DNA of 64,000 bases, from the NCBI GenBank assembly GCA_020891255.1, contig BQFW01000008.1, positions 1,054,001 through 1,118,000 of the forward strand, written 5' to 3'. How positions within the stretch are numbered: the stretch's first letter is position 1; the number at the start of each line of letters is the position of its first letter. Below the pieces are notes generated by a model. The model was not told the DNA's origin. It ran no database searches and worked only from the letters and a program-made list of their open reading frames with translations. This DNA is from Entomortierella parvispora E1425. Taxonomy: Eukaryota > Fungi > Mortierellomycota. Positions 14,842 through 19,472 of this stretch are shown here, piece by piece. Both the position numbers and the translations under genes were made by a program.

Positions 14842-15752
14842 ATGAAAACCAGATCTAAGCGACAGGCCGATGCAAGTGGAGAGACGTCTGGAAGTACTGA
14901 GGTTAATACACCTGTAGCCAAAAAAATCAGAGGCATCAAGGCAGTGGACAAGCCAGCAATTTTGAAGAGCTCCAAGTCCGAGCAGACTGCCGAAGCCCCC
15001 AAGGACCAAAACGTAAATGGGGACAAGGCTGATAGGACAAGTGTCTGGTTGATGAAGTCAGAACCTGACACGTTCAGCATCGACGATCTCATCAAATCGA
15101 AGGACTCGACCTCACAGTGGGACGGTGTTGTAAGAATGCCACTTCCTTTCGATGACACGAATTATTCTTTTGCAGCTTTGAAGTCTGACCCCACTATTTC
15201 ATCATAGAGAAACCACGAAGCGAAGAACCTTATGAAGCATAATATGAAGGTTGGCGATACAATCCTGTTCTATCACTCGAACACGAAGGAGCCAGGAATC
15301 GTTGGTATGATATTAGAAGGCTGCATCTGTTTGAAATGCAGGCCTTGTTGTTCATATTGTTTTGCGTCATACTGATAGGTCTCGCCAAGGTCGCAAAAGA
15401 CTCTTATCCAGACTACACTGCATTCGACCCCAAAAGTCCGTACTACGATGCAAAATCTACTGAAGATGATCCCCGCTGGTATATGGTATGAAACTCTGTA
15501 ATGATTGTAATGGCTAGAAGTAAACGATTTGACGAGGATGATTTGGCTTGCTGTTGTCCGCTTTAGGTTGATGTCAAGTTTGATCGGAAGCTGAGAAGGG
15601 TTATTACACTGAAGGAAATGCAGATCTACAAGGACAAGGAGCTCAAAAACATGAGGTTATTAAACCGTGGACGCCTTTCTGTTCTGCCAGTCTCGAACGA
15701 CGAGCTGGATTTCATCTTGAAGATTGAACAGGAAGACAAAACGGAAGAATAA
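14842..15752 (+). CDS. THYN1: EVE-domain protein (THYN1/thymocyte nuclear protein 1-like); exons 14842-15129, 15208-15304, 15379-15485, 15567-15752
   Basis: WLMKSEP..FSIDDL..WDGVRNHEAKN..MKVGD..FYHSN..PGIVG..YPD.TAFDP..PYYD.KS..PRWYMVDV..RGRLSV are hallmark EVE motifs. Confidence 0.92.
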
Positions 15753-15867
15753 AATCGTGAATCCTCGCTCGCTTATATCAACTTTTCAACGAAGCAAAAA
15801 GGTTGGACGTCTGGGACCCAAGCTGTCCCAACTCTTCAAGCCCTTCAAGGAAGGGGCAAAAGATGAA

Positions 15868-15939
15868 TTCCCAGTCCGGGGATCGAACCCGGGCCTTGTC
15901 GGTGAGAGCGACAAATCCTGACCACTGGACCAACTAGGA
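15868..15939 (-). tRNA. tRNA-Glu (anticodon CTC), intronless
   Basis: TCCTAGTTGGTCCAGTGGTCAGGATTTGTCGCTCTCACCGACAAGGCCCGGGTTCGATCCCCGGACTGGGAA folds as a cloverleaf. The anticodon stem is TGTCG/CGACA, A and B boxes are present, and a T-run follows. Confidence 0.96.
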
Positions 15940-15997
15940 ATTTGTTTAGATGACAATTGTTATATTGAATCCCTACAGTTTGTAAATCTCCCAAAAT

Positions 15998-16007
15998 ATC
16001 ACGTGAC
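15998..16007. promoter_or_regulatory. E-box ATCACGTGAC upstream of the antizyme gene
   Basis: Extended CACGTG E-box about 220 nt upstream of the antizyme ATG. This is a motif match only. Confidence 0.3.
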
Positions 16008-16227
16008 ACATATTATGATGTCATGATTAAGGGGCGTGTCTCGTGATTGGTGCAATTCTCCACAAAAAGCTGAACCTCCTGAGAGATGGGCCGATTCATC
16101 ATCTCTTCACTCTTCCCCACTTTCTCAGATTCAAACAATCTATCGATCATTTTTGATCTCTGCGTCCATATCCACAAACCCATTTTCCCACATTTCCACA
16201 CCGCTCAGCGAAGACAGCAAACCTATC

Positions 16228-17229
16228 ATGGCGGGCCTCATTAGTAATAGTAGTAATTTTAGTAGTAATGGTATGATGGCCATTAATTATCAACTCGAGA
16301 ATTTTGCCTCGGCTCCTGTCCGCCGCATGCAGCAGACCAACGTCTTGGCTGTGTGCTTTGCCGATGAGGCTGCGAAGGGGTCTCAGTGCTATGTGTATTC
16401 AACTTGTAAGTGAGTTTCTATCGCAAATATACTTTCTTCTGTATGAAGGAGGATTCAAGTGGCTTTACTAACGTCTCATATATATATAGTGGAGGGCAGA
16501 GGACAGTGGCGGCCCTGACATCCCTATTAATGATTGCGCGATGAAGCTCACAGGCCTCAGTGGCAGCAGGGCCTGTGAGCAGACTCGCCAGGTCGGCATC
16601 TCGGAGGAGGAGACTACTTTGTTCGTCAAGGACATGAAGCAGTTCCGCCCCTCAACAATCGAGGATGCCGGCCACCCCGCCGTCCTCAAGAAGGACAACT
16701 GTCTGGAAATGAATGAGGATCAGCTAAAGGATGTGAAGATTGACGCACGATTGACCATCACCTCGACGGACTCGAAGATGAACACTTGGTTCGGCTTTGT
16801 GTCCGAAGGTGCCCTCTTTTTGCGTGGCAACGGTTGGGATGACATGGACATCCGAGAGGTATGCTGCGGCGTCTGAATATGCTGGCTGACTAGATAATTC
16901 TTTGCTAATATTTTTTTCTTTGCGATTTCCTTGTCGTCATTAGAGCGTTGTTGCGGCCCTTGACCTGGCCGAGGAGCAGCTTGGTTGCCAAACTGTGCTC
17001 CTTTGTCTTGAGAAGAACGACCCCAGTATCGGTAAGTCGCGAACGTTCCAAAATCTACATTGTTTCGATCTTTGAACGGACTGGATGACTGAACGTGTTT
17101 TCTCCGTTTCTTTTACTCCAAATAGCAAAGCTTGTGCGTACGTTGATGTACGCCGGCTTTGAGATGGTCCACCCCGCAGTGCTTCCCAACGCTAACCCAA
17201 AGTACTTGGTCATGGGCATGGATTTGTAA
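16228..17229 (+). CDS. OAZ1: Ornithine decarboxylase antizyme, translated via +1 programmed ribosomal frameshift; exons 16228-16405, 16490-16858, 16944-17031, 17126-17229
   Basis: ORF1 ends ...LEGRGQWRP-TGA (16516-16518). The +1 frame starts GAC at 16517 and after splicing gives SVVAALDLAEEQLGCQTVLLCLEK..KLVRTLMYAGFEMVHP..YLVMGMDL*, the ODC antizyme domain. Confidence 0.95.
16513..16588 (+). promoter_or_regulatory. +1 frameshift cassette: CCC-UGA-C shift site and 3' stem-loop
   Basis: CCC TGA C at 16513-16519. GCTCACAGGCC (16546-16556) is the exact reverse complement of GGCCTGTGAGC (16570-16580). GCGA/TCGC (16538-41 and 16585-88) may extend the stem. Confidence 0.8.
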
Positions 17230-18133
17230 GCTGTCATAGCATGTGAAGCTGTGCATGCTGATCCTTGTCCCCAAAGTCGATCTCTTTCCCTTTTCTACCT
17301 CAACCAGATTTGAATAAATATTATTTTCTTTGAAAACCAGAGTTGATCTGTGCTTTTTTGTCTTTTTCGTCCATAGGAATGGTGGAGGGGCTTTTTCAGC
17401 ACGTGTGGCGTTTCTGACAAGGGACAGGTCTCAGCCTACCAAAATAAAGGTCGCCCATGTGTGAACTGGAACGAGTGCTGGTTGGGTTAGAGCCCAGGAC
17501 TTTGTTGTCTCTGTGGCGTTGTGCAACCGCCGTGTCTTCAGTAATGAACAAAAACATCAAGCATCCGCACAAACACAGCCATGAGAATCTAGGCGAATGG
17601 TTGCCAGAGAGCAACAGCGTGCTTCTGGCATCCCCTAATAACGTGGACCATCACGCTGCTGGCGGACCTTCTGGTTGTGTATGTTTTTCCATGCACGAAT
17701 GTACCTCGGCAAAATTGTTTGTCTGGCTCTATATGTTGTTGTAACGAAGAGTCATCGAGGATCCAGAGTTGCTCCGCATGCCTCCCAGAACTCTTCATGG
17801 TCCTCCGCTTTCTTGTTCTATTCTTGCTCTGCTGATTGAATCAGCTTTTCACTATTGACTGAAGGCCACGCTATCATGGACTAAGTCTAAAGTGCAGTAG
17901 AAAATTGTCGCAAACGGGCCGTCATGGTCCCTTTGGACAAAAAAGACGCGCTGAGAGCACAGGCACCGTATAAAGAGTGTGGGGACCAGGCGTCCTTTGT
18001 TCTGATTCACATCTCATTCCCTCATTCCCTCATCCCCTCATTCATTCGCTCATTTCTTCCTCTCTCCTCTCCCCACTCTGCTCTCAAGCCATATCTCTGA
18101 TCCCTACCTGGCGCCTTTCTCCTCTTTCACATC

Positions 18134-18535
18134 ATGCCTTCCCGATCCGAAGCCAAGCGCCTCTTTGTCTTTGACTTTGACTGGACCCTGATCGAGGCCG
18201 ACTCCGATAACTGGGTCTTTAAACACCTGTGCGAGGAGCTTTACCAAGAGCAGTTGGTCTCCGTTGGAAAGGTTCAATGGACAGATCTGCAGTACGTTCA
18301 AAAGAACAGCAGTCTGATACCCTTCATTCCTGTCATCTTTCCCTTACTTATTCGCTCTTTTTTTGCACATAGGCAACGTCTGCTGGGCGAATTGTTCGAT
18401 CGCGGTGTCACTCAGGCACAGATCGAGAAAACTCTTGGACAGATCCCATTTGTAAGGAAGACCGGGCTACCAAAGAGGACAAAAGACGACTCGTTTGCTC
18501 CACGCTGTGATCCCAGAATTGACGCTGTGCCTTTT

Positions 18536-18566
<31 letters not shown>

Positions 18567-19472
18567 GAATCATTGTAGGCGCCAGACATGATTGAAGCTC
18601 TTCGCCTGATGAAGGATGAGGGATCAGACTTGTACATTCTCTCTGATGCCAACACTATTTATATCGAGACCGTTTTGAAGGTACAGTCCACGCCTTCCCT
18701 TGCATGAAGATTTTTTTTTAATGGTGTTGACAGGACGAATCTTTCAATCCAGTCTACGCCTGTTGACATCAGGACGCTAACATCACTCCCTTGCGCTGAT
18801 CAATTTTTCTCTACAGGCATATGAGATCGACACTCTCTTCACTGGTATCCTCACTAACCCAGCCTCGTTTGATGAGCGTGGTCGATTGAACGTTGTCCGG
18901 TTCCATGGCTTGGATAAAGAGCCTCACTGCTGCCCTTTGCCCTGTGAGCCTAACCTGTGCAAGGGTCAGGAATTGCAAAAGCTGATGGATTCTCAACCTT
19001 GGGATCAGGTCATCTACATGGGCGACTCTACCAATGACTTTTGCCCCTCAACACGTCTTAACAGGTGAGAAGAAGAATGGGACCGACCTTTCAAAAAAAA
19101 AAAAAAAAAAAAAAAGAACACGGAAGATATGATCTTGAACGTGACTCTAACATTCTATTCACGTATACCTTCCCTCCCACTCTGTCCCTCGCCTCTCATT
19201 CGTGCTCCATGTGCAGCCATGATGTGGTCCTAGCACGTCGCGGTCTGTTGCTGCAAAAGGAGATTACGGAACGCCCCCAGTTGGTCAAGGCCAATGTCGT
19301 GTACTGGGAGAATGCCAAGGACGTGCTTTTAGCGACGAGATCTATTTTCAACGCTACTGGTGCTTCGGTCTCAAAACCTTCCTCATCGGCAATTGAGCAC
19401 GCTACGCTTCCAGCGCTCTCTGCCGTGGAATCCTCAGACTCAAAGGTCTTTGCTCAACCCGTTCGAGCATAG
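18134..19472 (+). CDS. HAD-family phosphatase, PHOSPHO1/PHOSPHO2 (pyridoxal-phosphate phosphatase)-like, 5 exons
   Basis: HAD motif I VFDFDWTLIEADSD, followed by ILSDAN, TNPA, NLCKG and IYMGDSTNDFCP. Four frame-consistent GT-AG introns. Confidence 0.92.

Follow-up and report, generated by a model that had tools for sequence, protein, structure and literature searches.

Ornithine decarboxylase antizyme gene of Entomortierella parvispora with a predicted +1 programmed frameshift at CCC-UGA-C

Introduction

Entomortierella parvispora is a soil fungus of the Mortierellomycota. In a 64,000-nucleotide stretch of its genome (G000:C8:1054001-1118000, here called the window; positions given without a prefix refer to it), the forward strand between 16228 and 17229 very probably carries an antizyme gene in which a short first reading frame, ORF1, is joined to a second one, ORF2, by a +1 ribosomal frameshift at CCC-UGA-C. 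The gene structure, the family membership, the conservation of ORF1, UGA and +1 ORF2, the coding selection in the ORF1 frame and the covariation of a downstream hairpin are observed in the sequences described below.

From yeast to humans, antizyme synthesis depends on the ribosome passing over one base at a stop codon, and this frameshifting is the standard example of a cellular programmed +1 frameshift that senses a metabolite. An earlier note on this DNA had proposed such a shift at CCC-UGA-C; the layout was read in the sequence, and the cassette was found again in 12 genomic loci and two transcripts. A literature search revealed no paper on antizyme frameshifting in Mortierella. Here we present the organization of the gene, its conservation within the Mortierellaceae and the signals around the predicted shift site.

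Organization of the gene

The antizyme gene is composed of four exons and three introns (Table 1). Frame 0 reads across intron 1 as T/TG GAG GGC AGA GGA CAG TGG CGG CCC TGA (L-EGRGQWRP-stop), with CCC at 16513-16515 and TGA at 16516-16518, followed by C. If T16516 is skipped, the +1 frame continues from GAC at 16517 with GAC ATC CCT ATT AAT GAT (DIPIND), stays open to 16858 and runs on through exons 3 and 4 to the TAA that ends at 17229. Both frames thus read as the earlier note had described them, a spliced ORF1 ending in GRGQWRP and a shift into GAC-ATC-CCT, and the intron that it placed 26 nt before the UGA indeed ends there, exon 2 starting at 16490. The two further introns that it placed downstream are borne out by the annotated protein EMPS_05998 (P0001), which is 100% identical across all junctions of introns 2 and 3, and by the spliced transcript of a relative, which is joined at the same places.

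ORF1 comprises 68 codons and ORF2 177 codons (114 + 29 + 1 + 33), and the predicted frameshift product would be about 245 aa long (68 + 177). Since frame 0 meets a TAA and then a TGA within five codons after the UGA, read-through gives nothing useful. At the ORF1 start codon (16228), positions -3 and +4 are occupied by A and G, respectively; wherever exon 1 is available, the context ATGG(A/C)G with its A at -3 is conserved.

Table 1. Coordinates of the antizyme gene and its features in the window
Feature	Position	Strand	Remarks
Exon 1, start of ORF1	16228..16405	+	59 codons and first base of a split Leu codon; ends in phase 1
Intron 1, 84 nt	16406..16489	+	GTAAGT donor, ACTAAC branch site, AG acceptor at 16488-16489
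Exon 2, carries the predicted shift site	16490..16858	+	
Last 26 nt of ORF1, L-EGRGQWRP	16490..16515	+	near-invariant 5' context of the shift site
Predicted shift site CCC-UGA-C	16513..16519	+	P-site Pro codon, ORF1 stop and following C
ORF2 portion of exon 2, 114 codons	16517..16858	+	+1 frame, DIPIND first; 100% identity to P0001
Intron 2, 85 nt	16859..16943	+	P0001 identity; spliced transcript of a relative
Exon 3, middle of the ODC_AZ domain	16944..17031	+	PF02100, 22.8 bits, profile positions 46-70
Intron 3, 94 nt	17032..17125	+	P0001 identity; spliced transcript of a relative
Exon 4, C-terminal part of ODC_AZ	17126..17229	+	PF02100, 18.7 bits, profile positions 77-114; TAA stop 17227-17229
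Conserved hairpin	16538..16588	+	fold and covariation

Antizyme family assignment

The gene is an ornithine decarboxylase antizyme, one of two in E. parvispora. EMPS_05998, to which the ORF2 part of exon 2 is identical, bears the UniRef name ornithine decarboxylase antizyme. Searches were run with single exons, and with database proteins in place of the joined ORF2. The Pfam domain ODC_AZ (PF02100) scores 52.3 bits on P0001 against a gathering score of 24.2 bits, and exons 3 and 4, each alone, match consecutive segments of the profile. P0001 also matches the rat and human antizyme 1 structures 1zo0, 4zgy and 5bwa with E-values of about 1e-8. Pfam searches with ORF1 and with the ORF2 part of exon 2, each alone, gave nothing meaningful.

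The layout is that of the family: a short ORF1 with its own AUG overlaps a +1 ORF2 that encodes the domain, and both the P-site codon and the stop of CCC-UGA at 16513-16518 are among the accepted antizyme shift codons. CCC-UGA is an established antizyme shift site on the accepted-codon list and efficient in reporter assays (PMC1874602); behind a mammalian 5' element it supported efficient +1 shifting in COS-7 cells (cited in PMC1874602).

Two genes for ODC-type decarboxylases (PF02784, about 262 bits each) are located at G000:C2:3053052-3053699 (L018) and G000:C12:2078537-2079190 (L019) and share 90% identity over 215 aa. The target of the circuit is therefore present in the genome, with two candidate targets for two antizymes.

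Conservation of ORF1, UGA and ORF2

The comparison set consisted of 12 genomic loci of nine Mortierellaceae species, namely Gamsiella, Mortierella alpina, M. claussenii, Linnemannia gamsii, L. zychae, Dissophora ornata, Entomortierella lignicola, Haplosporangium and both E. parvispora copies, together with two spliced environmental transcripts. All 14 sequences carry the shift cassette [UC]CC-UGA-C with ORF2 in +1, and the position of the stop is identical in each of them; the genomic form AG/TGGARGGCAG...CAGTGG-NNN-[TC]CC-TGA-C-ATC is present in 12 of 12 loci. The 26 nt 5' of the stop and approximately 30 nt 3' of it are almost invariant across both paralogues. Judged from the sequences, the recurrence of one layout in 12 genomic loci and two transcripts is far beyond chance.

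ORF1 is intact in 12 of the 13 sequences that include exon 1, and its peptide is conserved in the same proportion (12/13), with MxGL, a low-complexity run, LPLDxFAS, LAxC, CYVYST and L-EGRGQW[RC][PS]-stop. The ORF1 break was found in an M. alpina locus of clade B (L003:2490-2500, GCA_977091265.1), where exon 1 contains one base more than in all other loci, about 22 codons before its end, and the conserved MEGLDNCNT start is found further upstream in a different frame; an error of the assembly or a genuine lesion in that strain would account for the extra base.

EMPS_05998 is annotated as a protein of 200 aa that starts at the +1-frame AUG 16364 in exon 1, uses the same intron and reads MRLRRGLSAMCIQL-WRAEDSGGP-DIPIND, with 23 out-of-frame residues. 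The earlier note was correct in expecting a mis-annotated gene, but the model is not cut back to AUG 16541 in ORF2 as it had supposed. Were this annotation right, antizyme translation would begin at AUG 16364 and need no frameshift, ORF1 would be an overlapping ORF upstream of it, and MRLRRGLSAMCIQLWRAEDSGGP-type peptides would be produced instead of the ..GQWRP-DIPIND.. junction. The +1-frame path from 16364 is open across the intron, and several relatives have similar +1-frame AUGs, which their annotators likewise chose where they did not truncate the gene. We nevertheless regard a start at 16364 as very improbable in view of the following comparison.

The frame test measured, over 13 sequences, which fraction of the differing codons is synonymous in each of two frames, that of ORF1 and the annotated +1 frame. 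For the ORF1 frame this fraction is 0.40 in the last 45 nt of exon 1 and 0.52 in the 26 nt before the UGA, versus 0.15 and 0.18, respectively, for the +1 frame. CYVYST is invariant in 12/13 sequences with varying third codon positions, whereas the matching +1-frame peptide shows little conservation (MCIQL, MFILP, MSILR, IIIQP). It is therefore the ORF1 frame that is coding up to the UGA. M. alpina A, both Linnemannia species and E. parvispora B have no AUG at the position of 16364, and Gamsiella B has none at that of 16391. Four frame-0 AUGs precede 16364 in the window, the first of them in strong context, and in both transcripts the first AUG is that of ORF1. The public Mortierellaceae antizyme models that were examined seem wrong at the N-terminus, with the 68-residue ORF1 part missing.

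A different role for ORF1 would be that of a regulatory uORF only, with the antizyme made without frameshifting by leaky scanning or re-initiation at AUG 16541. This AUG is in the ORF2 frame, 22 nt after the UGA, and in the B-clade genes an AUG follows one codon later. However, it is replaced by ATA in five of the seven A-clade sequences, which have no other ORF2 AUG nearby, and ORF2 is therefore without a conserved start of its own. An ORF1 of 68 codons is also too long for efficient re-initiation. Its peptide is conserved as protein right up to the stop, and the antizymes studied experimentally all use frameshifting (PMC1874602), which makes the uORF reading highly unlikely. In the first 99 nt of ORF2 the frame test on the 13 sequences gave no clear codon-position signal, probably due to RNA-level constraints that overlie the coding constraint.

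Transcripts and splicing

Two environmental contigs, L016 (JGI, 946 nt) and L017 (ENA, 996 nt), belong to the A clade and share 75% and 67% ORF2 identity, respectively, with the window gene. Because all three introns are absent, both are spliced transcripts; L016 ends in an A-run, and the end sequence of L017 is presumably an Illumina adapter. Exon 1 and exon 2 are joined exactly at the predicted junction and CCC-UGA-C is kept in both, leaders of 105 and 155 nt contain no AUG before that of ORF1, and gene callers marked a pair of overlapping ORFs on either contig. The mature mRNA of these two A-clade relatives, which are distinct from E. parvispora itself, contains the UGA; the E. parvispora mRNA is predicted to keep it in the same way. 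The closest environmental match, P0002 (92% identity), was also considered as evidence on splicing; it reads into intron 2 and is therefore genomic and uninformative in this respect.

Enumeration of GT..AG pairs that span the stop and have a frame-restoring length gave 183 such pairs. The pair that deserves attention joins the real donor at 16406 to an AG ending at 16553: an alternative intron of 148 nt would remove the UGA and place ORF1 in frame with ORF2. From the real donor this is the only frame-restoring acceptor that keeps most of ORF2, as with two AGs far downstream (ending at 16808 and 16856) exon 2 would be almost entirely lost. However, the site at 16553 lacks a polypyrimidine tract, its AG is missing from L. 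gamsii, L. zychae and Haplosporangium, and in E. parvispora B it is displaced. In both spliced transcripts the proximal acceptor is used and the UGA retained, and the 26 nt that would turn intronic evolve as ORF1 codons. Alternative splicing is accordingly an extremely unlikely explanation. The earlier note had itself named splicing that removes the UGA as speaking against a frameshift, and none is seen in L016 and L017, both of them close relatives.

Two paralogues

In the tree of ORF2 proteins the sequences fall into two clades with 97/96 support. Clade A contains the window gene, Gamsiella, M. alpina, D. ornata, E. lignicola, L016 and L017, all seven with CGG-CCC-UGA-C. The seven members of clade B, from M. 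alpina, Gamsiella, two Linnemannia species, M. claussenii, Haplosporangium and E. parvispora (EMPS_05970), have UGU-UCC-UGA-C or CGU-UCC-UGA-C throughout (7/7). EMPS_05970 (P0036), the second antizyme of E. parvispora, is located on the same contig at G000:C8:985939-986725 (L006), about 85 kb upstream of the window gene and about 67 kb before the start of the window. It shares 45% identity with the window gene in exon 2, has the canonical shift site CGU-UCC-UGA-C and a first intron of 282 nt, and forms the same hairpin with four compensatory changes.

A Put_Phosphatase gene (PF06888) follows 3' of each antizyme copy in every genome examined, here at 18161-19325 (+) and at G000:C8:988152-988436. 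Its presence after both copies points to a segmental duplication in which the antizyme and the phosphatase were duplicated as a unit in the ancestor of the family.

UCC-UGA is a widespread antizyme site and presumed to be ancestral (PMC1874602); with the B paralogue and this literature as the basis, UCC is presumed ancestral in the Mortierellaceae as well. As UCC-UGA is widespread and the UGG-UGU-UCC of clade B is close to the canonical UGG-UGC-UCC, the CCC of clade A is most simply explained by one derived T-to-C change. The earlier note had called CCC-UGA a site known from fungal antizymes, which agrees with the survey of 2007, although CCC-UGA is listed there only for Ascomycota, with three independent origins (PMC1874602). 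Within the literature covered, CCC in the Mortierellaceae would be a further independent origin, outside the Ascomycota. Since CCC permits re-pairing of the tRNA-Pro with CCU and UCC does not permit it, the paralogues may shift by somewhat different routes.

Downstream hairpin and other signals

The hairpin downstream of the stop has an upper stem of 12 bp (16546-16557 with 16569-16580), which starts 27 nt after the stop, a lower stem of 4 bp (16538-16541 with 16585-16588), which starts 19 nt after it, and a loop of 11 nt with the invariant core GUGGCAG. The predicted fold has -32.8 kcal/mol (z = -2.5). In the alignment 99% of the cells are paired. Compensatory double changes occur at five pairs, and at four of these they are confined to E. 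parvispora B. None of 500 shuffles matched the observed values, and pairing collapsed when the partner strand was slid. RNAalifold finds the hairpin independently, and it is common to both paralogues. The covariation strongly supports it as a real structure. At 27 nt (or 19 nt) past the stop it would lie outside the ribosome during the shift, and its role, possibly a stimulatory one, is therefore uncertain. Ascomycete stem-loops at 31-41 nt from the stop raised the same puzzle of distance.

Two further pairings were considered. An outer helix in the fold of the single sequence (GAUU with GGUC) is disrupted in four of 12 sequences and was rejected. A 4-bp pseudoknot between the loop and the downstream sequence (UGGC with GCCA) is possible; both sides are invariant, and no covariation signal can therefore be obtained. 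An Rfam scan of 15500-17800 with E-values up to 10 gave a tRNA-Glu alone and no match to the antizyme pseudoknot model. The conserved box of Pezizomycotina, GGAAGARUGUGAGAG.., was absent from the window with up to three mismatches allowed.

Upstream of the stop, the conserved ORF1 tail may likewise have a stimulatory role. The amino-acid conservation of CYVYST-L-EGRGQW recalls the nascent-peptide stimulator of Agaricomycotina and is regarded as no more than a lead. If the CYVYSTLEGRGQW codons act on the shift, this could be a nascent-peptide effect or an RNA effect.

Proposed mechanism

According to the frameshift model, ribosomes would start at AUG 16228 and translate ORF1 until the tRNA-Pro is on CCC in the P site and a poorly terminating UGA-C is in the A site; UGA followed by C is a weak termination context. 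A fraction of the ribosomes would then move by +1, possibly with re-pairing of the tRNA from CCC to CCU, read GAC and continue through the 177 codons of ORF2 to yield a protein of approximately 245 aa that ends in the ODC-binding antizyme domain. The +1 event itself is predicted from the arrangement of the frames, and sequence alone cannot separate a +1 from a -2 shift. By homology with the studied antizymes, the efficiency of the shift is expected to rise with free polyamines and to close a negative feedback loop on ODC; polyamine dependence in the window gene would follow from this analogy. Termination at 16516 leaves two exon junctions 342 and 515 nt downstream, an arrangement in which unshifted termination may be coupled to NMD.

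More tentatively, and on balance doubtful, the change from UCC to CCC in one copy of an old duplication, both copies of which kept the hairpin and the ORF1 tail, could have given the paralogues different basal or polyamine-induced shift levels and thereby a sensor with two thresholds, perhaps corresponding to the two genes for ODC, with the hairpin as a new lineage-specific distal 3' stimulator.

Comparison with known antizymes

The antizymes of ascomycetes with CCC-UGA share with the window gene the P-site codon and stop, the layout of ORF1 and +1 ORF2, the C-terminal ODC_AZ domain and a conserved 3' stem-loop some tens of nt from the stop. In contrast, the window gene belongs to the Mortierellomycota, and its site occurs in a pair of paralogues whose other member keeps UCC-UGA. 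The 3' element of Pezizomycotina is a stem-loop 31-41 nt after the stop with its box 16 nt beyond, and this box is not found in the window; the loops of the ascomycete elements measure 18-130 nt, compared to 11 nt here.

With the cassette UGG-UGC-UCC-UGA of metazoa and S. pombe (mammalian OAZ1) the window gene has the class of mechanism, the domain, the UGA and a similar length of ORF1 (68 codons) in common. Its sister paralogue is closer to this cassette with UGG-UGU-UCC-UGA or UGG-CGU-UCC-UGA, whereas the window reads UGG-CGG-CCC-UGA-C, and the difference from the canonical context pointed out earlier is therefore confirmed by the sequence. The 5' module A is represented only by UGG and its final two C bases. 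This module is common in the antizyme family, though not universal. The metazoan pseudoknot starts 3-5 nt after the stop, while the window gene has no corresponding Rfam match and the base after its stop is C, not U.

S. cerevisiae OAZ1 has the shift site GCG-UGA-C. It resembles the window gene as a fungal antizyme with a non-UCC P-site codon and a weak UGA-C context, but its P-site codon is GCG; +1 re-pairing is possible at CCC-U and not at GCG-U, and the flanking signals are unrelated. Antizymes of Agaricomycotina combine a stimulatory nascent peptide with coaxial stem-loops on the 3' side (Yordanova et al. 2015, PMC4505036; PMC1874602). As in the window gene (CYVYST-L-EGRGQW), the end of their ORF1 is conserved as amino acids and a covarying stem of 10-12 bp follows 17-27 nt after the stop; their shift site is UUU-UGA, however, and the peptide and stem sequences are unrelated.

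The mechanism is thus of a known kind, and one more example of antizyme frameshifting leaves the textbook picture unchanged. The newer points are modest: a paralogue-specific CCC-UGA, a lineage-specific covarying distal hairpin and a systematic mis-annotation. UCC-UGA and CCC-UGA in near-identical contexts of one genome form a natural matched pair and a clean system for the effect of the P-site codon on +1 shifting. A hairpin with five compensatory pairs, too distal for contact with the shifting ribosome, adds to the unexplained distal 3' elements seen in ascomycetes. As Mortierella species are industrial lipid producers, correct models of their polyamine regulators are of some practical value.

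Leader and neighboring features

Nucleotide conservation of the 5' leader at 16180-16227 (+), ..cccac-ttttcc-acaccgctcagcgaagacagcaaacc.., extends across genera and is confined to clade A; the leaders of clade B are unrelated, and the clade A leader is possibly a paralogue-specific regulatory element. No AUG occurs within 150 nt upstream of ORF1 in 12 of 13 sequences. The exception is the window, where an out-of-frame AUG at 16086, 142 nt 5' of ORF1, opens an ORF of 52 codons (16086-16244, +) that overlaps the start of ORF1 and would make an overlapping uORF if transcribed. Inside ORF1 a +1-frame AUG gives the minimal ORF AUG-GUA-UGA at 16268-16276 (+). A tRNA-Glu(CUC) gene is located at 15867-15940 on the opposite strand (-), about 290 nt upstream of ORF1.
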